This document shows, piece by piece, positions 2,819 to 37,330 of a stretch of 64,000 nucleotides of DNA (position 1 is the first letter of the stretch; each line of letters starts with the position of its first letter). Source of the DNA: Botryllus schlosseri (lineage: Eukaryota); NCBI GenBank assembly GCA_051294905.1, contig CM119371.1, positions 7,130,001 to 7,194,000 on the forward strand, written 5' to 3'. The notes beneath the pieces were generated by a model. That model ran no database searches, was not told the origin of the DNA, and worked only from the letters and a program-made list of their open reading frames with translations. The position numbers and the translations under genes are program-made.

Positions 2819-3400
2819 GGGCATCCCTAAAAGACGGAAAAGCGGAAAAGCGGAAACAGCGGAAACAGCGGAAAACGAACCCTAAAACGCGGAAACAACG
2901 GAAACAGCGGAAACAATAAAAAAATGCCGATTCCTAAAAGACGGAAAGACGGAAATAGCGGAAAACTTAACCATCGATTAAATATCGGAATTTGATACTT
3001 ACATAATCTGCTCGCTGCGGAATCTAAATCAGCGGAAAAACGGAGTGCAGCCTGAGCAGCGGAAACAGCGGAAAATTTAACCATACCAGTTTGAGGCAAA
3101 TTTGACGGAAAATTTGACCATCGACTGCATAGCGGGCTTTGATACTGACATAATCAGCTCGCTGCGGATTCTAAATCAGCGGAAAACGGAGTGTAGCCTG
3201 AGCAGCGGAAACAGCGGAAAAGTTAACCATACCCGTTTGAGGCAAATTTAACGGAAGATTGACCATCGATTAGAGAGCGGACTTTGATACTGACATAATC
3301 TGCTGGCTGCGGAATCCATAGAAGCGGAAAACGGAGTGTAACCGAAGCAGCGGAAACAGCGGAAAAGTTAACCAAGGCCTACCAGTTTGAGGCGAATATG
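2819..3400. repeat. Left MULE TIR: (GCGGAAACA)n followed by about 3 copies of a ~146-bp unit; interrupted by a hAT MITE and resuming briefly at 4863-4878
   Basis: Reverse complement of the 9925-11275 array. Confidence 0.85.
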
Positions 3401-3408
3401 ACTTTGAT

Positions 3409-4854
3409 CAGTGGTTCCCAACCTTTTTCGGTGGCAGGGCCAAATTTAGAATTTCAGAGCACGGTTGGGGCCGCACGAATACAAGGGCAATGAGAGGAAC
3501 CCAAAATAGTCACCAAAAGATGAAAATTGGCAGTATTCCGATCATTCGCTTGACGCCATTGGCCATTGTGTTGCCGCGCTCCCGTGGTTCTGAAGAATCA
3601 ACATTTGCTGCCCATTTCGGAGTAGTTTTATTGCCCTGGCGAGATTTCAATTCGTATTTTTGGAATCAGTGCGATACTTGCTTTCTATAAACACCGACAT
3701 ATCAAATTATTCGGACGCTTGGGTCGCGAGCTATAGGACTACCAATTATGTTGCTATTTATCATCTTAATCGGGTGTCCCTTTAAGGCAGCTTCGCTCGA
3801 CTAATCGCGCCAAGCGCGAAAAATTTATATAATATAATCGGGAATTCCATAGATATTGGTATCAACTTTTATCCTCTCTCTGCTCACGTAATCAGATTGA
3901 CAGGCTGAGCCGAGTCAGTTGTGTTTGAAAAGGTAGGAACACTCAATCATAATTAAACATCTTCGGGCGTATACCCGTTGGCAGGAACGAAACAGCACTT
4001 CGTCAGGCCAAAAAACTTAGTTCTTGAGCTCCCATAGATTGATAAACCGACCCTCCGCCCCGTTGTTCGCTTCTGCCACGAAATCAGGATCACCGTTTAG
4101 TGAGCCAGCGTGGAGAGCGAAAATGTTCGATAATTCAAAATAAAATAGGTCAATAAGATCGGGAATTGCATAAATATTGCTATCAATTACTTGTCCTCTC
4201 TGCTCACGTAATCACATTTACCGGTTTGAGTGCGGTGTCTTGGAAACTGTAGGGCTCGTAAATAATAAATAAACATATTCGGACGGGCGGACCCGTTGGT
4301 ACGACTTCATTACATGATGTTATTTCATGACCTCAAGTCTACCATACGTATATATATAGAATCGCCCAAACGTACTAAACTAAAAGATGCACACGATTTC
4401 AAATTGGTATTTCTTCACTGACATATAATTCTTCCCTGCGGGATGGTAGCCTATTTGTCTCGTGACGTTCAGATTGCCAAGACAGGAACATTCGGCGCCA
4501 GACATTTAGGCGCCTGTGGTCAATTATACCTATATGTATTTTGTATATACATAACGAAGTTTTCGTTCCGCGTAAGGGCAGTCCTTTTGGGCCCAGGTTT
4601 TCTGGCTGCCGATCGTTCTGGCACACTTCTTGGAGTCGCATGTTACATGGCTGGAAAGTTAGCGCACATTGCATTGAAACAACAGTGACGTAATCTTACC
4701 AGTCTACTCACAACTTTCCTGCAATCCTAATTGAAAACTCCAGACTCAAAGCCAAGCCAGAGTATTTATTAATTTTTTTTTCATAAATCGATTTCTCAAT
4801 ATTTTTGTGGGGGCCGCAAGAAGGCTAGCTGGGGGCCGCGGTTGGGAGTCACTG
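3409..4854. mobile_element. Non-autonomous hAT-type element nested in the left MULE TIR
   Basis: TIRs CAGTGGTTCCCAACC / GGTTGGGAGTCACTG; 8-bp TSD ACTTTGAT (3401-3408 and 4855-4862); no credible ORF. Confidence 0.88.
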
Positions 4855-5031
4855 ACTTTGATACTGACATAATCTGCTAAATGTAATCGTGAGTAATCGT
4901 GATCACTTTTCCAATGTAATGGTAATCGCAATCGACTACTTCCAGATTTTGCTGTAATCGTTATCGCAATCGCGTGATTAAGAACTAATCGTAATCGCAA
5001 TCGATTTCGTTCATTAAGTAATCACCCCATG

Positions 5032-5250
5032 TCTGGTCTCAATATCGCGGTGTTTTCACTATAGCTTTAACCAGAGGTGGTCAGTAACGAAGTACTTCTA
5101 CTTTTTGGAAGTACTCAAGCAGTGTTCCTCTACTTCTGGTACTTACTCAAGTAGATCTGATTTTCTCTACTTCTACTTCGTAATATTTGGTTATCTACTT
5201 ACTTACTTTTCGCTATTTTAAGTTTGTCAAATAGAAGTAGCTTAATCTCC
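5032..5250 (+). repeat. MITE-like fragment (CAGAGGTGGTCAGTAACGAAGTAC..., TACTT-rich); second copy at 9676-9920
   Basis: The same 24-nt start occurs at 5032 and 9676, followed by degenerate CTACTT repeats; the other end was not found. Confidence 0.5.
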
Positions 5251-6027
5251 CAATATAGCCTGAGCCTGAGGAATTTCGGGGCTGTTTACACGGAGTACAA
5301 ACAAAGAACAACAAAGTAAATGGTGAGTTGCGTCATAACCACCGAGCTTTGCGTGCATAAAATTAATGTGAACGGCGTGGCACACTTCAAAGACAGTTTT
5401 AAGGAGTCATCGGAAATCCCGTATCTGCGAGTCTGTGACGATTTGGAGTTAAAAAGCCGAATTACCCAACTCGTTAATCGACAATTACGGGGGAATAATT
5501 TTTAGAGTTCTGAGAGGGGAATGAGACATGATGAAGTCATATTATGCGAAATTTATGCCGGAGTTGCGAGAGAATACTTTGAGTGCATGTTGACATGTTG
5601 ACTTTGAGTACATGTTAAAGCATAAAAACCAGTGTTGTAATGCCTCTATCTTCCGAGAATAAAGCTACATTAAAAATAACGTTAACGATCCACAATATTT
5701 GTTATTAACGTATACTAATCGCGCAAAGTGTTGAAACCGTATCCGATACAACTTCTCCGTATTGCTCTTCGCCTAAACTCGGGGCCTTATCATATGGGGT
5801 AGGGCGCCATGCCATGATATTCTCTAACACAAGGTTTTCCAGTAAACAAAAGGTTAGTATCGCATTTTCATATCAATACTATAATATGCATCCCATGATA
5901 CGAAAGAATGCTTATTCTGTCGATAGTTGCTAACACATGACACTTCATCAACGGAAAATGACAAATGAAACGATGATAATATTTACAGTCATGGCAAAAC
6001 ACAGAGTAAAAGGTCAAATACAAAAGT

Positions 6028-9000
6028 TCACGATTCAAGTTTTGCAGCTAAGCAGTCGTTCCTGTAACAAATGAAGTATGTCATCTCAGCAACATTTTCA
6101 TCGGCGAGACAAGACTTGTGAAACCATTTCCGACATTCGACACACATTATCTGCTGATCGTCGTGTTTACTACCTTGACATATGCTGCTGTCGCAATTAC
6201 CCCATCTCGATTTATCCGTGACAGCAATGACAGATGAGGAATCAGCTAGTTCTTTGTATGGCATATCACTGTCCGATATCGTAGCCCAATTTTCCAATAC
6301 AGAAGCGCATTTTGATCGGGCTGTGTCAGTCAATGTGAATCGGTACTCAGGTGACGGTCGCCGACTCTTTGCTAAGTGGTCCACCCACACTCGGCACCTT
6401 CCCGACGGAAAATCTTCTGACAAGGGTAAATTGTTAGACACGCAATAGGCATTTGCTATTACGTGAATGCCACAGTCGAATGTGTTCAATTACTGCTTCA
6501 CGTCCCTGCATAGAAAAAACTGCCAGTCCTTGATGTTGCATATCACATTCGCAACTGAAAGGCAAGCGCTAATCATTTTAAATATGTTGCGAAAAATATC
6601 CTCGTACCTCTTCCGATTTTGAGATACCATAGAATCCATCACTAGTGTGGTTTTGGTACTCAAGTTGACCACTGCCAGTATCCAGTGACTTTGAACATGC
6701 ACTAGAATAATGAAGAAGTCTTTGTTCGCCGCTTGGTGACTGAGCGCAAACTGGCAGAGATGAGATGCATTGCGATTATGCTCTGCATATCTGTACAGAA
6801 ACAAGTTGAAAAATTGAATACCAGGTTTGTCGATGCAAAATGCTTCTATTGCTCGCTCTATTGTGTCATCATCTAACCATTTCCCAGGTTTCAAGCATTG
6901 GCGTGTCACATGCTGCGGATTTTCATCCGTTGTCGACGAAAGCCATGGGTAATCATTGGGTGCGAGCAGCTTTACGGAGTCGGTCGTCAAATCCAATTGG
7001 AGTGATTCTTCATTCATTTCAGACATGTCTTCGTCGGATATCAACGATTGATCTGGATTTGATGGCTGTTGCGGGGGTGGATGTTTTTTTGACGTTGAAG
7101 AGTCATCTGGCGTGTTTTCAATATAATCAAAATCATTGGCGGCGAGCAGCTTTACGGAGTCGGTCGTCAAGTCCATTGGCAGAGCTTCATTCATTTCAGA
7201 CATGTCTTCGTCTGGTATCATCGATGGATCTGAGTTTGATGGCTGTTGTAAGAGTGGCTGTTTTTTTGGCGTTGAATGGTCAGCTGGCGTGTTCACTTTA
7301 TAATCATAATCTACCGTGCGAGGCCTTTTTCGACCAGACTTCCTGGTTCGACCCTTGCGATTTTTCAGGAGCTTACTCAAACTGCAGGGGACCTCTTTCT
7401 GTATGCTGTTGTCTCCGAGCGACATCGCTACAGCTAGAATATGATAGCATGTTGTAGTGCTTGCGCAAGTGCAAGATGGGGGCTTCGGGTGGTACCGGAC
7501 GCAATGAATCTGACGTTGAGTCATTGAAGCAACGGTGAATACGCCATTTGTCGACGAGAATCCAACCATATTATTAATTCCGCACCACCTTGCCATAGCG
7601 CGTTGGGTGAATCTTCGATTATCCTTTTTGTTCGCCCTGAAGAATTTCGTAAGATTTTCGTCTTTGTTGATTTCACTTATGATATCTTCAAGCGTTAACA
7701 TATCAGGAAACTTGATATCTTTGAGAATTTTTTTCATGTAGTTCAATTCCTCTTTAAGAGCATATCGCCCATATCCGCCTTCCGCGCGACGAAAATCATT
7801 CAAGTAGCCCGTCTGCAGTTGATGAAACCACAATATGATAGCATCCAATGTCATTTCCTTACGCCCGCTCGCAGCTTTCAGAACGTTATTCATTGATTCG
7901 CTGATATTGTTAGTAGGTGGGCCCTCATTCAAAGCGGCAAAATGCTTCGTTCTGAATTTGCAGGTATTTTTAGAAATGTCTCCCTTTAAATACTTGTCGA
8001 AATATGTTCTGAATTTGCCTGGCCATCGATTTGCCAACGTATCGTATTTATCGTTGAATTGATCCTCTTCCTCCGACGAAACCAACGTGCGTATATCCTC
8101 CAATATCCTTTTCAATTCGTCCTTTTTGAAAGAGTTATTGCGAAGCCATCTTTCAGCATCTTTGAGTATATGGTTCAGACAAAAAAACTTCGGCAAGTTT
8201 GGAAAAAATTCATGGAGTGGTTTCGTTATTCCCTTTTCTCGATCTGTGACAAATGGAATGTTTGAGCATTTATCCATCCCGAGGCAGTGCAATATGTCGC
8301 GGAGCATGTTTTCATGGTTTTTCATGAATTTTTTCTCATGCACCATAAATGCAACTGGGAATATTGGGTCCCCTACTAAAAATACGTTGCGGCACACCAA
8401 GACCGAAACGTAGAAGTCTCCGAGGGAGAAAGTGGTATCATAAGACAGTACTTGTGGCAGTTCCGTATTCTGCATTGATGCTTTCAGTATGTTTCTAGTT
8501 TCGTCAAGCAAATCGCTGTGTGCCATGCGGATAGTTATGTCGGGATATATTTCGATCATTCTGACAAAGCCGTCAGTGTGATCCGACATTTCTAATGCAT
8601 TATATACAGTGTCCTTGGAAATTCGAAGCGACTGCCGCTTTATGTATTTCACATTTTCACATTGTTTCACATCGCGCGGTCTGTCAGTGGGCATTCTAGA
8701 TTGATCCGATTGCCTCATTCCTTTAGCTTGTAACTCGGCGTACGTCTGTTTTGGTGTATTCCTGTCGTCTTTTTTGATTTCTTCCAGACATGTCCGAGAC
8801 GTGTGAACGAACACAGAATCCTTTTTCTTAATTGCATTGCCGTGTGAACTGTCTCGGTGCAGGGTACTGTCCCCCAAGTAGTGTACCAGATAAACGGTGC
8901 TGGACTCAGTATCTCTATCTTCTTGTAAAATCAGTGAATATACGTGTCGCTTGAACCCAGACAGCGATTTTCTAAGCTTGCCGTCTGGATCCTTCAAGTG

Positions 9001-9228
9001 ATAATATCTCTTGCGTACCCCTATTTTATCGTCGTGATGCATTCCTATGTGAATGAATCTATATTGATCACACTGAAAGTCGTTTCCTCCTGAGTTACAT
9101 GGAGAGCGATACAAATAACCTTCTCCACCTTTGGGCTGTACTGCCGGTTTGTCGTAAATTATTTGAGGGTTTTCCAATATTTCTTTTGCTCTTGCAAACT
9201 TCAGAGATTTATTTCCAAGCTGGAGCAT
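6028..9228 (-). pseudogene. MULE transposase fused to SWIM, Ulp1/SENP-like (C48) protease and PHD finger; one in-frame TAA at 6490-6492
   Basis: DDE motifs (LSYDTTF, FVTDRE, CLNH, TNNISESMN); SWIM CTCASTTTCYH; Ulp1 HWILAV / VMDS / Q*LNTFDCG; C-terminal C4HC3 finger (C..IC...CVECRKWFHKSC...C....C). ORFs 6490-9228 and 6028-6489 are contiguous and in frame. Confidence 0.88.
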
Positions 9229-9924
9229 ACTTTCAGCTTAGAATTACTTTGACCGCTTGCTTCTCAGCGGAACTGGTCGGCATAATTGGATTTATTCGCT
9301 GTTGCGTGAATCGAAGAGCAAAACATAACTGCTCATACCTCGCTGACATGCTTATCTGGGTCATCTTGGAATAATGAATAACAATAACTTCGCATTTATT
9401 AGAAAGTGTAATTCAATCTTTACCAAATAAACAGCATCGCTTCACAGCATCACACACTGTAAACGAAAATGGTGTGTTTTTGCAATTTACTGCATAGCGC
9501 AGGGCGTATTTCAAGTCATCACACCTTTTGAGTACTAGAATTATTATTTGCACCCATCCCCGTGGGTGTGAATAAGCCTAATACACCCCACCATACCATC
9601 AAAAACAAACCTCAAGCATTGGCATTTCGGGTGAATTATCAGTGATTACACCTTTTTTCAGGCACTTATGAATTCAGAGGTGGTCAGTAACGAAGTACTC
9701 CTACTTTTTGAATTACTTGAAGTAGATTTTGCCCACTCACACTACTTTTTAAGTAGTTATGATTTTAGACTACTTCTACCTCTACTTGACAGTTTTCAGT
9801 TTTGTAGGCAAAAATAAGCCTAGAAAACCTGCTTACTTAATTACTTTGAACCACCACTCCTACTTCTACTTGAGTAGAAATTCCGGTGTTAGTTCTACTT
9901 CTACTTGAGTAGCGACGATGAGCG

Positions 9925-11275
9925 ATTTAGATTCCGTAGCCAGCAGATTATGTAATCGATGGTCAAATTTTCCGTCAAATTTGCCTCAAACTGGTATGGT
10001 TAAATTTTCCGCTGTTTCCGCTGCTTCGGCTGCACTCCGTTTTTCCGCTGATTTAGATTCCGCAGCGAGCTGATTATGTAAGTATCAAAGTCCGCTATGT
10101 AATCGATGGTCATATTTCCGTAATATTCGCCTCAAAATGGTATGGTTAAATTTTCCGCTGTTTCCGCTGCTTCGGCTGCACTCCGTTTTTCCGCTGATTT
10201 AGATTCCGTAGCCAGCAGATTATGTTAGTATCAAAGTCCGCTATGTAATCGATGGTCAAATTTTCCGTCATATTCGCCTCAAACTGGTATGGTTAAATTT
10301 TCCGCTGTTTCCGCTGCTTCGGCTACACTCCGTTTTCCGCTTATATGGATTCCGTAGCCAGCAGATTATGTCAGTATCAAAGCCCGCTATGTAATCGATG
10401 GTCAAATTTCCGTCAAATTTGCCTCAAACTGGTATGGTTAACTTTTCCGCTGTTTCCGCTGCTTCGGCTACACTCCGTTTTTCCGCTGATTTAGATTCCG
10501 CAGCGAGCTGATTATATAAGTATCAAAGTCCGCTATGTAATCGATGGTCATATTTCCGTCAAATTTGCCTCAAACTGGTATGGTTAACTTTTCCGCTGTT
10601 TCCGCTGCTTCGGCTGCACTCCGTTTTTCCGCTGATTTAGATTCCGTAGCCAGCAGATTATGTTAGTATCAAAGTCCGCTATGTAATCGATGGTCAAATT
10701 TTCCGTCATATTCGCCTCAAACTGGTATGGTTAAATTTTCCGCTGTTTCCGCTGCTTCGGCTACACTCCGTTTTTCCGCTGATTTAGATTCCGTAGCCAG
10801 CAGGTTATGTTAGTATCAAAGTCCGCTATGTAATCGATGGTCAAATTTTCCGTCATATTCGCCTCAAACTGGTATGGTTAAATTTTCCGCTGTTTCGGCT
10901 ACACTCCGTTTTCCCGCTGATTTAGATTCCGCAGCGAGCTGATTATGTCAGTATCAAAGTCCGCTATGTAATCGATGGTCATATTTCCGTAATATTCGCC
11001 TCAAAATGGTATGGTTAACTTTTCCGCTGTTTCCGCTGCTCAGGCTACACTCCGTTTTCCGCTGATTTGGATTCCGCAGCGAGCAGATTATGTCAGTATC
11101 AAAGTCCGCTATTTAATCGATGGTTAAGTTTTCCGCTATTTCCGTCTTTCCGTCTTTTAGGAATCGGCATTTTTTATTGTTTCCGCTGTTTCCGTTGTTT
11201 CCGCGTTTTAGGGTTCGTTTTCCGCTGTTTCCGCTGTTTCCGCTGTTTCCGCTTTTCCGTCTTTTAGGGATGCCC
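9925..11275. repeat. Right MULE TIR: about 9 tandem ~146-bp units plus terminal (TGTTTCCGC)n
   Basis: Unit starts (GATTTAGATTCCG) near 9925, 10050, 10196, 10341, 10487, 10634, 10780, 10919 and 11064. Confidence 0.88.
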
Positions 11276-11449: not shown

Positions 11450-11966
11450 CAGTGATGAGCGGATAGTGCTTTTCGAGACTCCGAATCCCTCCGACAACTT
11501 TAGTGTCTGAGGAAAACTCCCTCCGACTCCGAAGAGCTCAATCCCAGACTCCGAGATACTCCGGTGAATGTCGTCAAGTATCCGAAACAGTGGCAAGCAT
11601 GGTACATGGTACACATGTTACAACATGGTACATGTGATAATATGGTTGGCCTCATAGTATTGCTTACTCTCCAGTCCCCAATTGCAGTGCAGATGGCTGA
11701 TTTTTATGCATCTGGCAATCATTTTTGCATGTTACCCGTCATATTACAACTTTACAAGGTGTCAACTGTCTGTGTTTTGGTTTGTAATCATAATCAATAG
11801 TGTATTCTGGTCAGAGCTATCCAAAGATATCGGAGACAAAAGTTACAATACTCCGAAATTCTCCGAAAAAATATCCGTAGTAAACTCCGGCTCCGCTCCG
11901 ACTGTCACAAAATTGGCAAAACTCCGCTCCGAATCCACTCCGACTCCGCTCCGATGCTCATCACTA
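11450..11966. mobile_element. hAT-type MITE upstream of the Merlin ORF
   Basis: TIR CAGTGATGAGC / GCTCATCACTA; 8-bp TSD AAAGATAC (11442-11449 and 11967-11974); subterminal CTCCGA repeats. Confidence 0.85.
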
Positions 11967-11985: not shown

Positions 11986-12927
11986 ATGGCAAATCCTATC
12001 AAGATGAACATGCGATATTTGGCAAGAATGGGAATAATCACCGATTTGGATAAATGCATAGCATTCTTAAGAAAACACCGTTTACTGGCCTCCAGAATGG
12101 ACTGCCAAGGATGTGGAAGCATAATGACCGAGGAGAGGACTTCCAGTACAGCGGACGGTCTTCGCTGGCGATGCCACGACTCCAAATGCCGGACTACGGC
12201 AACCATACGTAAAAATTCATTTTTTGAGAAGAGTAATTTGGGGCTCATCCAGCTGGTTATACTAACGTACTATTGGGCTTCTCGTACTCCACAACGACGA
12301 ATCTCTTTCGAGGCTGAAATTTCAAAAAGAGCAATAGTAGACTGGGCCAATTTCTTGCGAGAAATATGCTCTGCAGACCTCATAGATAGGAAGGGGCCCA
12401 TCGGCGGACCGAATAGCGAAATTGCAGCGGATGAATCGGTGGTCGCTCGTAGAAAGGCAGGCAACCGACAAGGCCGTCCAGTGAAAGCGGTGTGGATCTA
12501 CGGGGCCGTAGATCTCGTCTCTAAAGAAGCGTTTGTAGAATTGGTCCCGGAGTCAGGCAGAACGACGGAAAATCTGAAAGAAATAACATTGCGCAATGTG
12601 AGAGCAGGAACAACCATCAGAACCGACGCATTTTCTTCATATCGTTCTCTCAGTGACTGGGGAGGGATGGGGTATAAGCACAGGGTGATAAACCACTCGT
12701 TACACTATGTAGACCCGGTGACGCTTTTTCATACGAATGACATTGAATCGTTCTGGCGTCAGGCTAAGGAGCTATTGAAGCTACAAAACGGCGTAAGTCG
12801 AAGATTGATTCCAAGTTATCTGGACCAATTCCTTTGGTCGAGGATGTACCCAAAAGAAGATCATTTTATGCGCATACTTGAAGCAATAGCGGCCAACCCA
12901 AAATACTATATGGGAAGTGAAGTTTGA
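11986..12927 (+). CDS. Merlin / IS1595 (ISXO2-like) DDE transposase, 313 aa, intact
   Basis: N-terminal Zn ribbon (CQGC...WRCHDSKC), helix region, DES...GR...VWIYGAVD, IRTDAFSSY, HRVINHS..YVDP...HTNDIESFW, YLDQFLW: the characteristic IS1595/Merlin motif order. Confidence 0.93.
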   Translation: MANPIKMNMRYLARMGIITDLDKCIAFLRKHRLLASRMDCQGCGSIMTEERTSSTADGLRWRCHDSKCRTTATIRKNSFFEKSNLGLIQLVILTYYWASRTPQRRISFEAEISKRAIVDWANFLREICSADLIDRKGPIGGPNSEIAADESVVARRKAGNRQGRPVKAVWIYGAVDLVSKEAFVELVPESGRTTENLKEITLRNVRAGTTIRTDAFSSYRSLSDWGGMGYKHRVINHSLHYVDPVTLFHTNDIESFWRQAKELLKLQNGVSRRLIPSYLDQFLWSRMYPKEDHFMRILEAIAANPKYYMGSEV

Positions 12928-13106: not shown

Positions 13107-15512
13107 ATGGAATTCATTTCTGTTATTGGTAATCACTACATTAATGTTCTTTATGCAATTATTTTATTGTATATTTGGACTGAAGAGACGAAAGTTTACT
13201 GCAATATAGTTAACGTTTCGATCACAGAAATGCCCTCAGGATATGAAGACAGTTTCGTGAACGCATCAATCACGAATCTGCCCTCAGGCTATGAAGACCG
13301 TGCTGGGACGATAACCCAGGCCCAGTTCGGTCAGCTGCCTAGAGAATTACCAAAAGACTGGGCCAGATTGAATTCGTCGGCTTGGGAACATATATCACTT
13401 TCACAGTGTTGGCAAATTAAAAATGTAACTCATAATTTTACGAATCCGGGCCTCTTTTTTTCGTCGACCTTTGGATATGTCAAAGCCGAAAAGATCACAT
13501 TGCAAGAATACTTATATCCAACCGGGAAATACTGGACTAGCCTTGACCGGTTTGAACATACCTGTGTTTGTGGGCGCGAAAAGGCATACATCACTCCTGA
13601 TTTGAAGCTCAAGGCCCTGGAATCAGAAATAGTTTACGTTAGACCGACAGGCCACAATGTCAGATTGGCCTGGCGCTTTTCTGAAACATCAAGAAACATT
13701 CGAGATTGGAACCCGCTTGGTTTATATCAAATAGCAATTATGAAGTACAAATTGAAAGCCTTGAAAATGTTTGCTAGTTATTCAAGTATCAAAATCAGTT
13801 GTATAACTGAACAAGTTAGAACCGAAGAAATAATGAGACAGAGAAATATATACAATGATAGTTCTACCGACTTCGTGGACTGTGTCCGCTTATGGCAATT
13901 TTTACAGTGTACTATCTGTACGGTCAGAGGACTGGTAGTAAGTTTCGAGCCACACGCAAGCAAGATAATACTGCAAGAAGAAGATTCAACAAGGAACCTT
14001 CATGTCACATTGAACAAAGAAATGGATTTCGCACCTGGATTACGCAACTATCATCCTTCAGCCCCCGTATGGTTGAGAGACATGGCAGGCGATAAGCCTA
14101 CATTGCCAAAAAATATGATCTGGGTCTATCCTAGCTACATTAATAAGTACGGTTTCGAATATCGCGATGGGCCTACACCAACGAAAATAGCAGGAGCTCT
14201 GCCAATATACCTACAATACCCTTCCATGTTGAAGCAGGATCAATCGTGTATCAGAAGAATTCAAGGCAATAGGGCTATCTGCAATGATCCTGTTGGAGGT
14301 TTAAATATGAAATTGGCGTTTTGGGATCAAATTAAATACGATTCACAGTCAAATGAGAGAAGGTATCCCGGGAAACCATTTGTAATTTTAGGAGGGAAGA
14401 AGACGGGATTGGAACAAAGCGACTCCACGCTACCAGGAAGAACTAGAAAAAAGCGTCTTTTTTTTAGTTTGTTTATTTTATCGTTCTCTGTAATTTTAAC
14501 GTTGGCTGTAACGTCAAACCTTCAGGGAGTTCTGAACAAAAATATGGACCAGCTTACTTCTCAGATGAACGCACGATTCACAAAAATCGAAAATGATTTG
14601 AAGACAGTGGCAGACGGATTAAATGATCTCTCACTTATTGGAATTGCACGCGCCCAGAAACTTAATCAAGTCATTGTGACCAGTATGCGTCGAGATGCAG
14701 CAACTGAGGAAAGATTTAAAACTATTACAAATATGATTTGGACAAATCGTAATATGATAATTGCTCAAATAGACAGTTACTTGTCTACAATCCAAATGGT
14801 ACAAGAAATGACTCTTGCAGAATTAAGTTTGAATCAATTAGTTATGGAGCAATTGCAAAATCTAACTGCAAGACCCATATTCGATAAAAATAAGGCTTAC
14901 GCTGTACGAATAAAATCGGGAATTTTAAGCCTCCGAGAAATAGCTGAAAAAATCATTGAACTAAAAGATGAGTATGTGAACATTTCTCAAAACCAGGCTT
15001 TAGATTTACAAAATACACGAAGAGAGTTGCAGAAAATCGACAATCAAGCTGAAATCGAAATAACACGCTGGCAAGAGGATTTGAACAATAGTATTTTTGT
15101 GAATGCATCAGAGTTCTCAAACGGCAATGTTAGTTTCCACCATCTTGACCAAATAATTGGGGAGGAATTCTTTGACGACGTTGGAACCGCAGTCGAAACC
15201 TTGGCAAACGGGACTTCAAAAATTTTACAGAATGTCGCTAACGGCGCTAAAACTGTAATCACAGAAGGAGTACACGGAATAACTTCTATCCTAGGAGCAG
15301 GGACACAAGCTTTGTTTGGTGACATTGGAAGTATAGTCTTGCCCATAGTGGGAGTGATTGCAGCCATAGGCATATTGATTTGCATGATCAAAATCTATCC
15401 AGTAATATTCCCGAACAAAAAGAGGATCCATCGTGAAATTCAAGGAAGAAACAATAGATCTGAAATGACCACGTATACAGCAATTCTCGCTCCAACGTAC
15501 CATCAAAGATAA
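13107..15512 (+). CDS. Viral envelope-like class I fusion glycoprotein (Env1), 801 aa
   Basis: N-terminal hydrophobic signal; Cys-containing ectodomain with many N-x-S/T sequons; furin site RTRKKR (14439-14456) immediately followed by hydrophobic LFFSLFILSFSVILTLAV; long heptad-like helices; Gly-rich pre-TM; TM IVLPIVGVIAAIGILICMI; short tail with YxxPhi. Confidence 0.8.
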   Translation: MEFISVIGNHYINVLYAIILLYIWTEETKVYCNIVNVSITEMPSGYEDSFVNASITNLPSGYEDRAGTITQAQFGQLPRELPKDWARLNSSAWEHISLSQCWQIKNVTHNFTNPGLFFSSTFGYVKAEKITLQEYLYPTGKYWTSLDRFEHTCVCGREKAYITPDLKLKALESEIVYVRPTGHNVRLAWRFSETSRNIRDWNPLGLYQIAIMKYKLKALKMFASYSSIKISCITEQVRTEEIMRQRNIYNDSSTDFVDCVRLWQFLQCTICTVRGLVVSFEPHASKIILQEEDSTRNLHVTLNKEMDFAPGLRNYHPSAPVWLRDMAGDKPTLPKNMIWVYPSYINKYGFEYRDGPTPTKIAGALPIYLQYPSMLKQDQSCIRRIQGNRAICNDPVGGLNMKLAFWDQIKYDSQSNERRYPGKPFVILGGKKTGLEQSDSTLPGRTRKKRLFFSLFILSFSVILTLAVTSNLQGVLNKNMDQLTSQMNARFTKIENDLKTVADGLNDLSLIGIARAQKLNQVIVTSMRRDAATEERFKTITNMIWTNRNMIIAQIDSYLSTIQMVQEMTLAELSLNQLVMEQLQNLTARPIFDKNKAYAVRIKSGILSLREIAEKIIELKDEYVNISQNQALDLQNTRRELQKIDNQAEIEITRWQEDLNNSIFVNASEFSNGNVSFHHLDQIIGEEFFDDVGTAVETLANGTSKILQNVANGAKTVITEGVHGITSILGAGTQALFGDIGSIVLPIVGVIAAIGILICMIKIYPVIFPNKKRIHREIQGRNNRSEMTTYTAILAPTYHQR

Positions 15513-15615: not shown

Positions 15616-18600
15616 ATGAAGATAAAGATCTTCCGGGAGTCGATAATTGGGATCATGTGGATTCTAATCAATTTGAGTCAAGGTAAAAAGGTATCTCTTA
15701 CTGAAATGTCACTAATAAAATTGCACGATTTAAATGTTTCACGTTGGATGCTGTATAATGAGAGTCAAGTTATATTACATGCCCCGTTACATAGGTTATT
15801 TGAACTAGATGCACCCACTACTTCTAATTATGGGCACATCGAAATGATTACAGGACATAGCAGTCAATTTGGACCAGTCAAAACCTTTGGTCAGACATTG
15901 CAAAATAATCTTGGGAGGAAGAATCAACATAACGTATATTGGGAGGATCCTTTAACCTTTGAGCAAACCTGTATTTGCCGAAGGAAGATTCACTATATTG
16001 AACCACCTCTGGCATATGCAAATTTGTATAGAAAGATCAGATACGTAAGAGCAGATAAATTTAATGCGCGTTTCATTTTTCGTTGGGCTGAAAATAATAT
16101 CACCTTACCAATATCAAATCCCCGAAATGCACACACTCCCGTAATGACAGTATACAAATATCTAATCATAAATTTGCTCATAAATTATCGAGTAGTGATT
16201 GCCAATTGTGTAAAAATATGGCATCCTGAGAAATTCGAAACCAGCATCTCAATGCGTAATTTCTATGTCTGTACAACTGGAGATCAAAGATTGACGAAAT
16301 GTTACGCTTGCCAATTTAAGGGAGAAAACCCAGTCATGAATATAGTGGATACTGGAATATTCATACAAGAACAAGATAGTACGATCAATGATTTTGTAAC
16401 AAGGAACGACACTGACAGTGCTTTAGATTCTAGCATACTATATGCCGCCTCAGAAAATAAATGGCCTTTAGAGTATTTTGACAGAGTGGCGTCAAATCGT
16501 ATATATTGGATTAGAGCTAGCTCGAAAATATCTACTGAACTTATATTAGAGGACGGTGACAACTGCTTTCGTGATGGACCAAATCTTAGACAAGCCGGAA
16601 GTATACCAATAAAAGAAACTACACCATCTATGATGGCAAATGACCCAAATTGCCATCGTCGTGTACTGGGAAAGACAAAATGTAATAAACCTATGGGTGG
16701 AGTTGAGGCCAAACTTATGCTTGGAAATCACATGACGTATGACCCTTCACTAAATAAACAACAATTTGTGAATGTTCATGGAGGTTTTTTGATGAAAAAC
16801 AAAGGATTTCGCATTCCCGAATCATTTGAACATAGTAATCAGACTTTCCTTTTGGTATGGAGACATGGAAATACGAATAGAATTGGCCAAATACTACGTG
16901 AAAGTTGGTTTCAAGCACGAGAAAGGGTAGTTACCATTTTCGCTAATATATCCAGACCAATTAACATGATAAGATCTAGATTACGAGCAATGATGTCTCG
17001 CGAACGAAATTTTCCAAGAACGATGAATATATTATCGAACAAAATCTCCAGACTAAAGAGGGGACTATTGCCAACAGAAGTATCACGATTAAACAAAGCA
17101 TTCAGTCAGATGACTGCAGCTATGATTCTATTGAGAGCGACTATGCGACAGATAGAACTGTTTGAAATAAGAATTTGTTATAAAGCTAGCTTTCAAAATG
17201 GAAGTTTAATTTATGTTCCTTTCGCCTATAAGGAAACTGTGCCCCGAAGCGATTCACTAACATCCAGCATACCAGAAACAGATATGACTACATTGACGAA
17301 TAGCGAAATTACACTATCTCGAATGACATCATCAGTTGTGACAAATATTACGGATAATATAGGAATTGGCGCATATACAGTGGTAGAGTCACCATTAAGG
17401 ACTAAGATTTTGACATCGTCTCTATCGACATCGCCTGATACAATATTGAAATCATCAAACGTTACTATTGGGAGAAATCAGACATATGATGTCACTAGGC
17501 CCGAGGCCCTACTATCACAAATACCAACACAGGTAACCTTGTCCGAATATTCAACTAATTCACCGACTACAAGAGAAACTGATCAGCACCGGCAAATGCT
17601 AACAGCAGCATCAGATACGACCATCTTTTTGCCAGAAGTTCAGCGAAATTCAAATTATTTCAATACCACAACACCATCAATAATACTTCCATATGAGGTA
17701 AGTGCACAAAGAGTAAGCATTCTCATTACAGGTATATTTAATACAACGACACAAGCAATGAAGAATACAGATATAATCACAAGGAATGCCACGTTCACCC
17801 GATCTACAACACATACAACACCGATGTCAATCATGATGGCCATTACTACATTAACAGAAGACAACTCAAGCTCAACTGCAAACTCCACAAACTACAAGGA
17901 AGACTCAATTAAATTGCCGCAAGCCGGTAAGTGGACTGTAACGACAAATGAAGATATATTGTTCAGACCAACGATAGAACCAAAGTCAAATTCGACAACT
18001 GAAACGCCAAATCCATTCTCACCCATATCAAACTTATTAAACACGTCGGAAGAATTACAACAAATTTCAACAACCCCAGTGGGAAAACGCAGCTCAGTTG
18101 CAGAAACCATTACCCAAGAAGATATGCGAGGTAACAACGTTTCAACACAAAATGACTCGAGTCATACAAACAGATTACAATCAAGTGCTCCAACGTTCAT
18201 AACAAAACATGCAAGTATAGTAGAAATTTCAAAAATGTCTCACAAGATTGTAATGAATAATTCTAACAGCTCAGTCAATGACAACATAAGTATTTTTGCC
18301 ACGCCTGATCCTAGTAGACATAGGGTTGGAAAAAGATCCTGGGAAAATACCACCATTTTGGCCAATAGCACGAATCAAAATCCAATTATGACGGAAGAAA
18401 TAACATTTAGGTCAACAAGCCAACCATTGATGTCAGTTAGAAGAGTTGAAATCGGACCCACGACTGATAGTAGAAGTACTAATTTCAGTGGACAGAGCCC
18501 CATGCACGTCACAAGAAGTAGTACTGAAGAAAAATTGAACACTAATCACAATACTACGTCTTTAGCATCATATACTACGCAAGCTACAACAGAAACTGGT

Positions 18601-19218
18601 GAAAAGATCAAACCAACTATGAGAAGTCGGGTAACCCACATGAATATTACTTGGGAAAATATCACGTTAGCACCAAATAGATCAAACTGGGACACCACTA
18701 ACTTAAATCTAAGTAATTATGAGACTACTATGAAGTATGAGTTGGGCCCTGAGCATACCAGAGATCAACAGTTGATTACCAAGAATATGCCTAAGGCGAC
18801 ATATTTAGCTTTTCAACCTAATGTAAATTCAAGCTGGATGGTATCGCCAAGTGATAATGAAGAAAAATTCAATTGGACTCAAGAACTTTACAAATTATCC
18901 GCCTTGGAGAGGAATTTTTCATTGGAAATAGATTCATACATCATCTTCAGAACTCATGTCAAGCGTGTCAGGGAACTTGCAAATGAAAATCTCTCTGGCA
19001 TTGTAAGCGCTGGAATCATTATAGCAATAATCACTGGAATAATGATATATCTAGTACGAAAATTCTGCAGTCAAAAGAAACAATACAATATGCGTGCTCA
19101 ACGTAGAATTGTAAAACGTAATGTGAGACACGAGTTGAAAAGGAAAATCCTAGAAGAATTGCAGAATAACTCAGAAATAATGGCATTAAATCATGAAATG
19201 AATGAATTAATCGCATAA
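15616..19218 (+). CDS. Type I membrane glycoprotein (Env2): Env1-paralogous head, mucin-like Ser/Thr stalk, TM anchor; 1200 aa from the ATG
   Basis: Signal peptide (IIGIMWILINLSQG); head motifs collinear with Env1 (FEQTCICRR vs FEHTCVCGR; QEQDST vs QEEDST; RDGP; CHRRVLG..CNKPMGG vs CIRRIQG..CNDPVGG); ~500 aa T/S/N-rich; TM GIVSAGIIIAIITGIMIYLV; basic tail. Confidence 0.78.
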   Translation: MKIKIFRESIIGIMWILINLSQGKKVSLTEMSLIKLHDLNVSRWMLYNESQVILHAPLHRLFELDAPTTSNYGHIEMITGHSSQFGPVKTFGQTLQNNLGRKNQHNVYWEDPLTFEQTCICRRKIHYIEPPLAYANLYRKIRYVRADKFNARFIFRWAENNITLPISNPRNAHTPVMTVYKYLIINLLINYRVVIANCVKIWHPEKFETSISMRNFYVCTTGDQRLTKCYACQFKGENPVMNIVDTGIFIQEQDSTINDFVTRNDTDSALDSSILYAASENKWPLEYFDRVASNRIYWIRASSKISTELILEDGDNCFRDGPNLRQAGSIPIKETTPSMMANDPNCHRRVLGKTKCNKPMGGVEAKLMLGNHMTYDPSLNKQQFVNVHGGFLMKNKGFRIPESFEHSNQTFLLVWRHGNTNRIGQILRESWFQARERVVTIFANISRPINMIRSRLRAMMSRERNFPRTMNILSNKISRLKRGLLPTEVSRLNKAFSQMTAAMILLRATMRQIELFEIRICYKASFQNGSLIYVPFAYKETVPRSDSLTSSIPETDMTTLTNSEITLSRMTSSVVTNITDNIGIGAYTVVESPLRTKILTSSLSTSPDTILKSSNVTIGRNQTYDVTRPEALLSQIPTQVTLSEYSTNSPTTRETDQHRQMLTAASDTTIFLPEVQRNSNYFNTTTPSIILPYEVSAQRVSILITGIFNTTTQAMKNTDIITRNATFTRSTTHTTPMSIMMAITTLTEDNSSSTANSTNYKEDSIKLPQAGKWTVTTNEDILFRPTIEPKSNSTTETPNPFSPISNLLNTSEELQQISTTPVGKRSSVAETITQEDMRGNNVSTQNDSSHTNRLQSSAPTFITKHASIVEISKMSHKIVMNNSNSSVNDNISIFATPDPSRHRVGKRSWENTTILANSTNQNPIMTEEITFRSTSQPLMSVRRVEIGPTTDSRSTNFSGQSPMHVTRSSTEEKLNTNHNTTSLASYTTQATTETGEKIKPTMRSRVTHMNITWENITLAPNRSNWDTTNLNLSNYETTMKYELGPEHTRDQQLITKNMPKATYLAFQPNVNSSWMVSPSDNEEKFNWTQELYKLSALERNFSLEIDSYIIFRTHVKRVRELANENLSGIVSAGIIIAIITGIMIYLVRKFCSQKKQYNMRAQRRIVKRNVRHELKRKILEELQNNSEIMALNHEMNELIA

Positions 19219-22255: not shown

Positions 22256-23167
22256 ATGGCAACTCCTTCAGATCTACCAGCAACATCACAATCTTCTGTC
22301 ATTATACTTGAAGATTGGGAGCCTGTACTACGGGAAACTGATTCCGATGATGATTTCCCTCTAGACAATGATTACAGAGTCCAGATTGAAATGGAATGTA
22401 GATGCAATACATTTTGTAATCTTTTTTTCTGCCGCGGACCTCTACTGAAAGGAAAGGGAAGATCGCGATTTTATGGCCTGAGTTTGACAACCTTGCTAAC
22501 AGGCCTTGTCAACAACATGCACAGATACGGTGGTGAATTGGTAGATAGACTGGCGTTCAGATTGAATTCACGAATCAGAGAATGGACTCAACAACGAGCT
22601 GTTTGTAACAGAAGAAACAAGCTCAATATAATCAACTACCAGTTCATTGTCGGTGGAATCGAAATGGATATCGACCATTATATAACACGATTTGCAAGAA
22701 AACACCTACTAAGACACGACATAATCCCATCTCTCAAAGGTGGATACAGCAAGAGGGATTGGAATGAGATGAACATTGATGTGTGGGAAAGAACTAATTG
22801 CCCAGTTTTTCTCGAGAGAGAGGAAGATATATTTCATGCGTTCTCGATTTGCGACGAAATATGGAGAAGATTGCCAACAGCCTTCCCAATGTTCAAGGGA
22901 TTAGAGTCGTCCTTGTGTGAACCCGTGAAAGACGTGAACTGGAAGAAAGCAGCTGTCGAGCAAATAAGAAGGGATGCCATTATATTCATCTACTATCCCA
23001 ACCTTATCATTGAATCGCTAGCAGCAGGCGACTGTTTTTACAATGTAGAAGAACTCCGACCGGAGGCGGAGAATGTGTACAAAAACAGGTACCTAATGCA
23101 TGTAAAGATTGGGAAACTAAGAACATTATTGATCCGATATGATGAGAAGAATAAGAATAAGGAATAA
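22256..23167 (+). CDS. Orphan 303-aa protein within the virus-like cassette
   Basis: ATG-initiated 912-bp intronless ORF in AT-rich surroundings; acidic N-terminus (ETDSDDDF) and Cys cluster CRCNTFCNLFFC; no family recognised. Confidence 0.7.
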   Translation: MATPSDLPATSQSSVIILEDWEPVLRETDSDDDFPLDNDYRVQIEMECRCNTFCNLFFCRGPLLKGKGRSRFYGLSLTTLLTGLVNNMHRYGGELVDRLAFRLNSRIREWTQQRAVCNRRNKLNIINYQFIVGGIEMDIDHYITRFARKHLLRHDIIPSLKGGYSKRDWNEMNIDVWERTNCPVFLEREEDIFHAFSICDEIWRRLPTAFPMFKGLESSLCEPVKDVNWKKAAVEQIRRDAIIFIYYPNLIIESLAAGDCFYNVEELRPEAENVYKNRYLMHVKIGKLRTLLIRYDEKNKNKE

Positions 23168-24903: not shown

Positions 24904-26037
24904 ATGAAGAAAATTTTTTCGAAAAAGCCGAAATCTACATCAAAGGATGCTCAAGCCTTACAAGAGAATCTTGCTCTTATGAAGGACACAGTCAAACGTC
25001 ACCAAGATGTTGAAATGAAACGAAGCCAGTTGAAATTGGCCGTAAAACAACAAGCAGAATTATTCAACGACATGAAAAATTTAATTCCAAAAACCACAAA
25101 AGAACTAGACTCGGCAAATCGTGACGTCAAGACCGCTCAAGCCGACCTATCAATGATAAAGCGCGCAACTGAAAAAGCATCTATGAAGATTGATTCTCAG
25201 ACGTTAAATGAAGTTCTTTCGGCGGAATTTGATTTAGGAAAAGCACATCAGAGAACAATAACCGGCTCCGGTCCAGCAACGTTATCGGCCGCCGTAGAAG
25301 TTATATCACCGCCTGCACCAAACTTGATTTCGATTAAACAACCAACTAAGCCACCAGCATATGCAGTAACCAGACAGCAATTGCAAACTGGCGAGAAGGG
25401 AAATAACAGTGATGTCTTTGCCCAAAAAATAGCCCCGCTTATACCGCAGAAATTGGTACCAACAGGCTCCAAACAGAAAAATACTTACAAGAATATATAC
25501 CCCCGATTAGATGGAGGTAGCGATACACAGTGTTATGTGACAGGTATCGAAGGTGTGGATACAATCCCTAATAACCTCATAATCCGGGGGTCATTTTTAC
25601 CCCAGCAAGACCCAGAATTCGAGCCGAGAATCCTGGCTTCACAGCGGACTCAGTTAATCCCACCGCCACTTTTCTCGCCAAATGTGATTCATGAACAAGG
25701 CCGTTTAGTAGTACCTTCCCCTGAGAGACGCGGGGTACCGTGGTACCTGCCGGAAGAGGCTCAAAATGACGATTCGGGGAGGCTCGATGATTCAGATGCT
25801 GCGGCATCTAATATCTCTGACCCACTGCCATACAGAAACAAGCGAATTATGCCGATGTCAGAGATGATCTCTGTAATGAAATCGGCTGGGTCAACACCGT
25901 TATTGCCTTGGTTGGAGGATAACCTCCGTATCCTGGATCATAAAAACGGCAATAGCCTTATCGATCGAGTCCTGGCTAACGCGATGCAGGCAAAATTGAT
26001 CGAAGCAGGCCGTCGGGAGGATGCAGAAATATTCGAT
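24904..26037 (+). CDS. Gag/matrix-like protein, truncated at 26037 by repeat DNA (ORF reads through to 26181)
   Basis: Basic amphipathic N-terminus (MKKIFSKKPK), ~100-aa coiled coil, Pro-rich middle with PPAY and YPRL late-domain motifs, then a helical capsid-like start (PLPYRNKRIMPMSEMISVMK...PWLEDNL). The last ~47 aa come from the minisatellite. Confidence 0.6.
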
Positions 26038-27500: not shown

Positions 27501-27503
27501 AAG

Positions 27504-28010
27504 TCTGTTCTGCAAATTGTGAATTCAAATACCGGTGAAAAATTTTCAGACCCTGCGATCGTCGCGAATCACTTCAATGAATATTTTTGTAACGTAGGCT
27601 AGGTCCTAATATTGTCTCTTCTCTTGCGAAACCTGCGTCAGCCAGGCCGGAGGTAAGATCGACATCTCAGTCTGTTATGCTCGATCCTGCCAATCACGCC
27701 GAAGTAGAAGTAGCCATCCACAAACTGAAATCCAACAAGGCCGTCGGCAATGATCAAGTCCTATTTTTTAAACTTCATGATAGAAAGCGGTGTCTATCCC
27801 AGCTCTGAAAACAGTCAGAGTGGTACCAATACACAAAGCTGGGGTTGGAACTAATGTCACTAACTATACAGAGTACAGACCGATATCTGTTCTTCCGTGT
27901 ATTGGGATTGTCTTCGAAAAGCTGCTCCTGTCTCGCCTATCTTTCTTCAATACCTCGCCAAAATGTCTATAATTTCCCCGCATCAATTTCGATTCCGCAT
28001 TAAACACCAA
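27504..28010 (+). pseudogene. Degenerate LINE (CR1/L2-group) ORF2 fragment upstream of the RT core
   Basis: Translates as DPAIVANHFNEYFCNVG*, EVEVAIHKLKSNKAVGND, VVPIHKAG, YRPISVLP, FEKLLLSRL, with stops and frameshifts. Confidence 0.85.
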
Positions 28011-28014
28011 ACCT

Positions 28015-28215
28015 CACATCATCATCATCATCATCTAATGGTTTATTAGCAATTTTATCAGTTCAATACACCACACAATATGCGATACAATGAAAAGACA
28101 GGAAGAAGTCCAAGCGACTTGGAGTAGGCTAGTCTATGGAATCAGACACCCGCCTTAGCCTAGGAGATGTAAAGAGGAGGCATGCACAGTTGCACAGAAT
28201 GCACACTGAATGAAA
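28015..28215 (-). repeat. LINE/SINE-type 3' tail ending in (GAT)n
   Basis: Reverse complement of the tail inside repeat A, ending in a longer (GAT)n run. Confidence 0.7.
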
Positions 28216-28337
28216 GTAAAGATCTAGGGATGGTGTGAACTTCTGAAAGGTTCAGGTTCGTGTGAACGCGAACCGAAAGGTTCTGTGTGAACGCGAACGT
28301 GAACCTCACGACGTCACGTGACGTCATATTGCTAATT

Positions 28338-37272: not shown

Positions 37273-37330
37273 TGTTTTACTTGATTTGCAAAAAAGTTCT
37301 TTGTCATTTTATAACTTTTTTGGGGGGGTA

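Follow-up and report, generated by a model that had tools for sequence, protein, structure and literature searches.

An unannotated viral-type envelope gene located beside an IS1595/Merlin-type transposase gene in the genome of Botryllus schlosseri

Env proteins of retroviruses and ERVs, including gamma-type Env and syncytins, are class I fusion proteins with the following order of parts: a signal, a glycosylated and disulfide-bonded surface subunit, a furin-type R-x-K/R-R site, a hydrophobic fusion peptide, a helical ectodomain, a single anchor, and a short tail. Gamma-type proteins additionally carry a CX6CC loop and an immunosuppressive domain in TM and a CWLC motif in SU. Among Ty3/gypsy errantiviruses across Metazoa, a survey found only F-type and gB-type env (PMC13524379), and the F type also has a conserved furin site and a hydrophobic fusion peptide. 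In nematodes, Maverick/Polinton DNA transposons have captured a viral fusogen, so that a gene for a DNA-transposon-type integration enzyme is physically linked to a membrane-fusion gene, suggesting a route for cell-to-cell or cross-species spread (bioRxiv 10.1101/2022.07.12.499685). Merlin/IS1595 transposons, in contrast, are described as single-gene elements with 24-462-bp inverted ends and 8-9-bp target duplications, and they lack the N-terminal zinc finger (PMC8101967). Here we describe an intact env-type gene that follows an IS1595/Merlin-type transposase gene, a pairing for which we found no report in the papers that could be searched.

The gene is located at 13107..15512 (+) of the window, which is the whole 64,000-nucleotide stretch that we analysed (Botryllus schlosseri, GCA_051294905.1, contig CM119371.1, positions 7,130,001 to 7,194,000). 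It is open from ATG to stop without breaks and encodes 801 aa. The other two forward frames of the same stretch hold 64 and 52 stops, and the longest stop-free run in 200 shuffles of the window is 190 codons, so the ORF is far beyond chance. An earlier note, made from the sequence alone, described it as an intact class I fusogen with no recognisable family, and its observation of the gene and its layout is confirmed by our analysis. The protein begins with a hydrophobic signal peptide or signal anchor (13107..13181 (+), aa 1-25; hydrophobic at aa 3-24, predicted helix at 3-25). This is followed by a tandem duplication of 48 nt or 16 aa (13209..13304 (+), aa 35-50 and 51-66), in which 35 of 48 nt and 11 of 16 aa are identical and each copy carries an N-x-S/T site. 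The duplication lies in a variable region of low model confidence (pLDDT below 50 for aa 26-103) and is absent from the two closest relatives, P0001 and P0002. The core of the surface subunit (13434..14381 (+), aa 110-425) is predicted to be a beta-rich domain, with pLDDT mostly above 90, and contains the conserved cysteines. There are ten Cys in the surface part (32, 101, 153, 155, 232, 259, 268, 271, 381, and 392), eight of which are invariant in the three closest proteins. We note that this is only 2.4 per cent, so the term Cys-rich in the earlier note is generous.

The only R-x-K/R-R site is RKKR at aa 447-450 (14445..14456 (+)), a predicted furin-type cleavage site that is invariant in the three closest proteins. 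It is directly followed by a 20-residue hydrophobic peptide (14457..14516 (+), aa 451-470, Kyte-Doolittle up to 2.4), the predicted fusion peptide. No Cys is found between residues 451 and 740, and this region of about 285 aa of ectodomain is predicted to be almost all helical. It contains a long helix (14520..14807 (+), aa 472-567) as the candidate N-terminal heptad region, a second long helix (14934..15086 (+), aa 610-660) as the candidate C-terminal heptad region, and a membrane-proximal amphipathic helix (15165..15227 (+), aa 687-707). The hydrophobic periodicity of 3.5-3.6 residues is weak in the single sequence, where the a/d test is not significant, and becomes clear only in the family profile, where it is strong for 610-660 (at 3.5 residues exceeded by 0 of 2000 shuffles) and moderate for 472-530 and 687-735. 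The AlphaFold2 models were monomers, and the fusion-subunit model has only moderate confidence (pLDDT 63). The membrane anchor lies within aa 733-770, with the strongest hydropathy windows from aa 739 and a predicted helix at 741-763 (15327..15395 (+)). The cytoplasmic tail (15396..15509 (+), aa 764-801) contains YTAI at 790-793. This YxxPhi motif is not conserved in the two closest relatives, whereas the neighbouring E786, M787, and P796 are conserved. There are 13 N-x-S/T sites in total, 12 of them before the anchor, consistent with a type I membrane glycoprotein.

To find relatives of the protein, we searched sequence, profile, and structure databases. Pfam, NCBIfam, and PDB sequence searches, PDB profile searches with two family alignments, and Foldseek searches of the full model against PDB and BFVD and of the fusion subunit alone against PDB gave nothing significant. 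The best PDB Foldseek E-values are 0.5 for the whole chain and 0.58 for the fusion subunit, the latter hitting only generic antiparallel coiled coils. In contrast, a HMMER search against 1.84 billion representatives found about 40 relatives, none of them named. The absence of a recognisable family proposed in the earlier note therefore holds only for annotated families. Of the 23 relatives that cover the site, 19 keep R-x-K/R-R followed by a hydrophobic peptide (family mean Kyte-Doolittle 1.70 over the 18 aa after the site), the surface-subunit Cys are conserved in the family, and the fusion-subunit ectodomain has 0-2 Cys in all 19 members that cover it. The retroviral CX6CC, CWLC, and immunosuppressive-domain signatures are thus absent, as the earlier note had stated for CX6CC/ISD. 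Back-translated pattern scans for env relatives in JGI metagenomes and IMG/VR, and for the transposase in IMG/VR, returned nothing significant.

We compared the family with individual groups of fusion proteins. Foamy virus Env (PF03408; PDB 8ozh) is the only viral Env family touched at all. One of 40 relatives, P0026, matches the last 60 positions of the Pfam model (positions 913-972 only) at E 1.2e-5, and the family profile touches the C-terminal 70-80 residues of chain 8ozh_A at E 0.14-0.28. However, the Pfam score of 23.8 bits is under the curated cut-off of 27 and covers only the membrane-anchor region, the window protein itself gives no hit, and no fold match was found, so we rejected membership in this family. 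No F family was found among the Pfam hits of 40 members, and no F structure among the Foldseek or PDB profile hits. In our protein the predicted beta-rich domain lies before the cleavage site and the fusion subunit is almost purely helical, whereas in F proteins the globular domains lie after the site. No Pfam, PDB, or Foldseek hit to herpesvirus gB was found. Hits to coronavirus and torovirus spikes were sub-threshold only, with Spike_torovirin at E 0.027 in one member, HR1 peptides at E 0.1-0.6, and spike chains at a Foldseek E of about 1, and hits to HA2 were sub-threshold as well. The PDB profile hits to HA2, coronavirus HR1, and the foamy Env C-terminus were of coiled-coil type.

The family is tied to mobile elements. 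Three distant relatives, P0008, P0013, and P0010, lie just after gag (zinc knuckle) and pol (RVP, RVT_1, and RNase H, without an integrase domain) in retrovirus-like elements, the position of env. This pol is nearest to caulimovirus, Ty3, and foamy-virus enzymes, with foamy Pol ranking third. The closest relatives, like the window copy, lie directly downstream of an intact DDE transposase of a bacterial type (IS1595/Merlin). In the window this gene is located at 11986..12927 (+) and encodes 313 aa, similar to the about 310 aa of Merlin transposases. It matches Pfam DDE_Tnp_IS1595 at 2.1e-14 and NCBIfam transpos_IS1595 at 8.5e-19 (68.3 bits, under its 75-bit cut-off), and it has a conserved four-Cys N-terminal region and the D149, D214, and E254 triad, which is invariant in the alignment (A5). 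The transposase-env order is found in 5 independent contigs, namely the window, the contig of sequencing run SRR25569784 that carries P0001, and the contigs L007, L008, and L009, in the last three of which transposases 43-48% identical sit upstream of env relatives. L007 has both genes intact. The env-linked transposases are monophyletic in a neighbour-joining tree. The other 24 transposase relatives carry no env in the stretches examined, although only about ten of these stretches extend roughly 700 nt or more downstream of the match.

A second glycoprotein gene, which the earlier note had not seen, follows the env at 15616..19218 (+) and encodes 1200 aa from its first ATG. It is a paralogue of the env (28% identity over 320 aa, E 5e-27), with a signal peptide, a surface-subunit-like domain, a Ser/Thr-rich mucin-like region (about nt 17263-18765), 36 N-x-S/T sites, one anchor (about nt 18988-19065), and a tail. 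RLKR is present, but no hydrophobic peptide follows it. The pair of env and mucin-like paralogue recurs as P0002 with P0022, and probably in a third contig, where P0001 is followed by a further, unidentified gene of at least 463 aa. The three genes of the window are tightly packed on one strand, with spacers of 179 nt and 103 nt. Directly upstream of the transposase start, two blocks at 11479..11953 (+) hold 16 copies of the short motif CTCCG without an inverted partner elsewhere in the window. They may be regulatory or subterminal repeats, if they belong to the unit. No inverted pair was found between the upstream region and the 19.2-26 kb or 39-42 kb stretches, nor in L007, although the ends could lie outside the stretches compared. 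No LTRs were found around the unit, no capsid gene is seen, and tblastn with the gag and pol of relatives found nothing cognate in the window.

Based on these observations, we believe with fair confidence that the ORF is the env gene of a virus-like mobile element sitting in an animal genome, and that it represents a new sequence family and, judging from the predicted models, a new fold family. The layout and its conservation, the membership in an unannotated family, the gag-pol context of distant members, and the position of close members immediately downstream of a transposase that has diverged along with them are established by our analysis, whereas cleavage, trimerisation, fusion, the class I fold, and any assignment of the machinery that moves the unit are inferred at most from layout, context, and predicted helices, and the structure searches neither confirmed nor refuted the fold. 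The interpretation in the earlier note, a divergent fusogen either from a recent virus or retained by the host in a syncytin-like manner, is partly supported; the context favours an element-borne env over a syncytin-like host gene. In this view, the protein would enter the ER through its N-terminal signal, be N-glycosylated, and be cut after RKKR450 by a furin-type protease into a receptor-binding surface subunit (about aa 26-450, with a disulfide-bonded core at 110-425) and a membrane-anchored fusion subunit (451-801). The two subunits would stay together without a disulfide, because the fusion-subunit ectodomain has no Cys. On triggering, the hydrophobic peptide would insert into the target membrane, and the helices 472-567 and 610-660/687-707 would fold back into a hairpin that pulls the membranes together, as in class I fusion proteins. 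The paralogue would be a duplicated surface subunit with a mucin-like stalk, most likely acting as an attachment or shielding partner.

If this reading is correct, the family would add to the F-like and gB-like env of invertebrate elements a third, unannotated type with a class I-like layout and no detectable relative among solved or predicted viral structures. The repeated, co-diverging linkage to an IS1595/Merlin-type transposase would be a second example, after nematode Mavericks, of a DNA-transposon enzyme travelling with a viral fusogen, which bears on how mobile elements cross cell and species boundaries. The Maverick fusogen is herpesvirus gB-like, and in our unit the enzyme is of a different type and no polymerase or packaging genes are seen. 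Relative to described Merlins, the unit has the four-Cys N-terminal region, one or two passenger glycoprotein genes, and no detectable inverted ends. The tandem pair would also show how an attachment protein can arise by duplication of an env. A further, tentative possibility that the evidence leaves standing is that a lineage of IS1595/Merlin-type DNA transposons, or of integrase-less retroelements using such a transposase in place of an integrase, carries its own envelope module of a class I-like fusion glycoprotein and a mucin-like attachment paralogue, taken from or shared with gag-pol retroelements. This would be a new kind of enveloped mobile element in animals.

Among alternative explanations, the unit may be the 3′ part of a larger retrovirus-like element in the order pol, transposase, env, and env2 (the paralogue), with the transposase standing where an integrase would be and the 5′ half lost or never received by the window copy. 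The lack of an integrase domain in the pol of distant relatives and the otherwise retroelement-borne nature of the env family are consistent with this, as is an unidentified gene of at least 613 aa on the same strand, 440 nt upstream of the transposase, in the P0001 contig. We consider it unlikely, however. In the window, the 9-bp target-site duplication of a MULE shows that the sequence to its left was once continuous with the upstream region of the transposase, and this sequence leads within about 1.3 kb to an opposite-strand BTB-Kelch gene, not to pol. The only RT next to the transposase, in L008, is LINE-like and unrelated, so we rejected it as the pol of the element. The RT fragments in L009 lie after the env fragment, not before the transposase, and no gag-pol contig of the family shows an IS1595 domain.

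A domesticated, syncytin-like origin is less likely still. In this case, an env captured long ago would be kept with its paralogue for cell-cell fusion or as an antiviral restriction factor, and the transposase would be co-domesticated or irrelevant. The absence of gag-pol, LTRs, or inverted ends around the unit agrees with this reading. All three ORFs remain intact although other transposons have landed on both sides, intact relatives at 38-50% identity imply long-term constraint, and base composition resembles that of neighbouring genes. Conserved Merlin-type transposases without detectable ends have also been read as domestication in other eukaryotes (PMC8101967). On the other hand, run SRR25569784 alone holds at least two diverged loci, P0001 and P0002, fragmentary copies exist (P0006, P0007, and many short members), distant members are plainly element-borne, compact same-strand packing with a catalytically complete transposase (as judged from its triad) is typical of an element, and upstream synteny is not kept between the window and the P0001 contig. 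Finally, a non-fusogenic surface glycoprotein, such as an adhesion, receptor-mimic, or immune-modulating protein that resembles a class I fusogen only by coincidence, would fit the lack of a significant structural match, the weak single-sequence heptad signal, and the moderate model confidence, but is very unlikely, as the basic site with its hydrophobic peptide is kept across a family diverged to 20-30% identity, family members sit in the env position after gag-pol, and the paralogue lacking the peptide shows that the peptide is a specific, retained feature of this gene.

Rfam and tRNA scans of the window gave nothing significant, nor did Pfam and PDB searches of the ORFs 22256..23167 and 24904..26181. 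The only LTR pair (30729-31139 / 37331-37741) belongs to a separate BEL/Pao element at 30.7-37.7 kb, which we rejected as the owner of the env because it has its own identical LTRs and lies 11.5 kb beyond the end of env2 (about 15 kb beyond the env), inside another transposon. The BTB-Kelch copies were considered as inverted ends of a giant element and rejected, as there are three paralogues; the nearest named proteins to the BTB-Kelch gene are from gastropods and are only 20-24% identical.

The open reading frame at 13107..15512 on the + strand runs from ATG to stop and encodes a protein of 801 residues, and the observation made in the earlier note stands. Chance does not give an intact frame of this kind, as the other two forward frames of the same stretch hold 64 and 52 stops, and the longest stop-free run in 200 shuffles of the window is 190 codons. 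The protein contains the features that the note had listed: a hydrophobic N-terminus (residues 3-24), a tandem duplication of 16 residues (residues 35-50 and 51-66, identical at 11/16 residues and 35/48 nucleotides), ten cysteines before residue 393, a single R-x-K/R-R site (RKKR, residues 447-450) followed at once by a hydrophobic stretch (residues 451-470), no cysteine from residue 451 to 740, one membrane anchor within residues 733-770 (predicted helix 741-763), and a 38-residue tail containing YTAI. We note that the duplication and the YxxPhi motif are absent from the two closest relatives, that ten cysteines in 425 residues is not especially rich, although the note had called the surface subunit Cys-rich, and that the heptad pattern in the single sequence is not significant against shuffles.

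The note had described the protein as having no recognisable family, which holds for annotated families, but the protein is not an orphan. Searches of Pfam and NCBIfam gave no hit, and sequence and profile searches of the PDB gave only sub-threshold hits of the coiled-coil type. In contrast, a full HMMER scan of 1.84 billion representatives found 40 relatives, 12 of them below an E-value of 1e-30. All of them come from metagenome or read-archive assemblies, and none of the 20 that we looked up carries a name. The closest relatives are P0001 (791 residues, about 50% identical) and P0002 (769 residues, 38% identical), and P0003/P0041 (892 residues, about 30% identical) is also full length. In a three-way alignment of the window protein with P0001 and P0002, RKKR, eight cysteines of the surface subunit and many helix positions are invariant. 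Across the family, 19 of the 23 members covering the site keep R-x-K/R-R followed by a hydrophobic 18-mer (mean Kyte-Doolittle value 1.70), the main cysteines are kept in at least 82% of occupied rows, and the fusion-subunit ectodomain holds 0-2 cysteines in every member that covers it. The family has two modules, an N-terminal one (window protein residues about 60-246) and a C-terminal one (residues about 322-790), and some relatives carry them in separate open reading frames or with CUB or EGF-like extensions.

To examine the fold, we built an AlphaFold2 monomer model with the 40-sequence alignment, which has a mean pLDDT of 68.5. The beta-rich surface core (residues 110-425) is confident, with values mostly above 90, while the N-terminal region holding the duplication is disordered. 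The fusion subunit is predicted to consist of a helix over the hydrophobic peptide, a helix of about 95 residues (472-567), a short helix, a small hairpin, a second long helix (610-660), a membrane-proximal helix (687-707) and the anchor. A model of the fusion subunit alone repeats this arrangement at pLDDT 63. Foldseek searches found nothing at E <= 0.001. The best E-values for the full chain were 0.5 against the PDB and 0.02 against BFVD, and the best for the fusion subunit against the PDB was 0.58, where the top hits were Smc arms, BAR domains and chemoreceptors, that is, generic antiparallel coiled coils. In the family-averaged hydropathy profile, a periodicity of 3.5-3.6 residues is strong for residues 610-660 (reached by 0 of 2000 shuffles), whereas the 3.5-residue signal is marginal for residues 472-530 and 687-735 (reached by about 5% of shuffles); power at 3.6 residues is higher in both of these regions, a value without a comparison to shuffles. 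The predicted geometry is therefore compatible with a class I hairpin but is no proof of it, and the surface core looks like a fold with no solved counterpart.

The gene is closely flanked by two others. Upstream, after 179 nt, lies an intact gene for a 313-residue IS1595/Merlin-type DDE transposase (11986..12927), which matches the Pfam model at 2.1e-14 and the NCBIfam model at 8.5e-19 (68.3 bits, under its 75-bit cut-off). It has a conserved four-Cys N-terminal region and an invariant D-D-E triad. Sixteen copies of CTCCG in two blocks (11479-11953) lie right upstream of its start codon and have no inverted counterpart anywhere in the window. Downstream of the env, after 103 nt, lies a second large open reading frame of 1200 residues counted from its first ATG at 15616 (env2). 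Its N-terminal 300 residues are a paralogue of the env surface subunit (28% identity, E 5e-27). It keeps a basic site (RLKR), but no hydrophobic peptide follows, and it then has a Ser/Thr-rich region of about 500 residues, one anchor and a tail, with 36 N-x-S/T sites in the whole protein. Two further same-strand open reading frames, 22256-23167 (303 residues) and 24904-26181 (425 residues, with a coiled-coil N-terminus), lie downstream of the glycoprotein pair, and neither has a match in Pfam or the PDB. A tblastn search with the gag and pol of the env relatives found nothing cognate in the 64 kb, and no inverted ends for the transposase-env unit were found in the stretches compared.

The neighbourhoods of the relatives fall into two groups. 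The distant members P0008, P0013 and P0010 (25-29% identical) lie directly after gag and pol. The gag has a zinc knuckle, and the pol has retroviral protease, RT and RNase H domains but no integrase domain. The nearest solved enzymes to that pol are those of cauliflower mosaic virus, Ty3 and foamy virus. After RNase H, the pol of the env-carrying relatives (contigs L003, 3480-6563, and L001, 6573-9305) ends in about 250 residues with only a weak likeness to RNA 2'-phosphotransferase (Tpt1/KptA), at E-values of about 3e-4 to 2e-3. One such element, in contig L001, is framed by inverted repeats of about 4 kb at 99% identity (1-3963 and 17910-21868), which themselves contain small open reading frames, an unusual frame for a retroelement. 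A different arrangement is seen in contig L004 (1-13173), where about a dozen open reading frames are packed on one strand, including MATH/TRAF-like, ubiquitin E2 and BIR-RING (IAP-like) genes together with the two env modules. This contig looks like a virus-like genome with captured host genes, and it has no RT.

For the close members, an IS1595-type transposase gene sits immediately upstream of the env in four further contigs. These are the SRR25569784 contig with P0001, which is also followed by a further gene of at least 463 residues; L007, where a 311-residue transposase and an 892-residue env are both intact and 93 nt apart; L008; and L009. These transposases are 43-48% identical to that of the window and form one clade in a neighbour-joining tree computed without support values. 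The other 24 relatives of the transposase in JGI metagenomes carry no env in the stretches examined, but these contigs are short, and only about ten of them extend roughly 700 nt or more downstream of the match. The RT beside the transposase in L008 is LINE-like and unrelated. The pair of an env and a mucin-like paralogue recurs as P0002 with P0022.

These observations partly support the interpretation in the earlier note, which proposed a divergent fusogen either from a recent virus or retained by the host in a syncytin-like way. The layout of a divergent class I-like fusogen is real and has no annotated family. As the protein belongs to an unnamed env family of mobile elements, an element-borne gene is more likely than a syncytin-like host gene. 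Our analysis shows the layout and its conservation, the family membership, the env position in gag-pol elements and the conserved linkage to a transposase. The working of the protein, in contrast, is inferred: it would enter the ER and be glycosylated, a furin-type protease would cleave it after RKKR450 into a surface subunit and a fusion subunit held together without a disulfide, peptide 451-470 would insert into a target membrane, and helices 472-567 and 610-707 would fold back into a hairpin that drives fusion. In this view, the neighbouring paralogue, having lost the fusion peptide and gained a mucin-like stalk, would serve attachment or shielding. The compact same-strand packing suggests an element-style expression unit, but this is weak evidence. 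No AATAAA or ATTAAA was found in the two spacers, and the first one within the about 480 nt scanned after env2 is at 19581. The unit could be moved by the transposase acting on ends that we could not find, or by a larger retroelement in which the transposase stands in for an integrase, or nothing may move it any more.

Compared with known systems, the protein is inferred to work like a retroviral or ERV Env, but it lacks the gamma-type signature (no CX6CC or ISD) and matches no Env family. The single Foamy_virus_ENV hit is under the curated cut-off and confined to the anchor region. Judged by the Pfam and Foldseek searches, it is not of the F type or gB type, the two env kinds reported for invertebrate Ty3/gypsy elements (PMC13524379). 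The transposase has the Merlin/IS1595 domain but, unlike described Merlins (PMC8101967), has an N-terminal Cys cluster, passenger genes and no detectable ends. A full-text literature search found no paper linking Merlin or IS1595 with an envelope gene, and the nearest conceptual parallel is the capture of a fusogen by Maverick transposons in nematodes (bioRxiv 10.1101/2022.07.12.499685). What is new here is the env family and the gene linkage, and if the transposase-env unit proves to be a self-contained element, it would represent a new category.

The rest of the window is ordinary animal genome rich in transposons. A MULE-type DNA transposon occupies 2826..11275 and contains an intact 912-residue open reading frame (6490..9228, minus strand) that combines a MULE transposase with a C-terminal Ulp1 (C48) protease domain. 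It has inverted ends with 146-bp subterminal tandem repeats, and its 9-bp target-site duplication (AAAATAGGC) shows that it landed upstream of the IS1595-type transposase. An element with long inverted arms (about 97-99% complementary) built of 43-bp subterminal repeats occupies 26038..38967. Its left arm supplies the last ~48 codons of the open reading frame at 24904..26181, which is therefore probably cut by the insertion. Nested in its right arm is a BEL/Pao LTR retrotransposon (30729..37741) with one 1975-residue gag-pol open reading frame and 411-bp LTRs that are 100% identical, indicating a very recent insertion. There are three intronless BTB-BACK-Kelch paralogues, at 556-2196 (-), 42157-43785 (+) and 62023-63651 (+), which are 87-93% identical in DNA including their upstream regions; the nearest named proteins, gastropod KLHL10-like, are only 20-24% identical. 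A 243-bp unit is perfectly duplicated in tandem at 28337-28822, and an array of degenerate 53-66-bp repeats rich in CCCTAA-like motifs, which resemble telomere repeats, lies in an interstitial position at 54182-54832.
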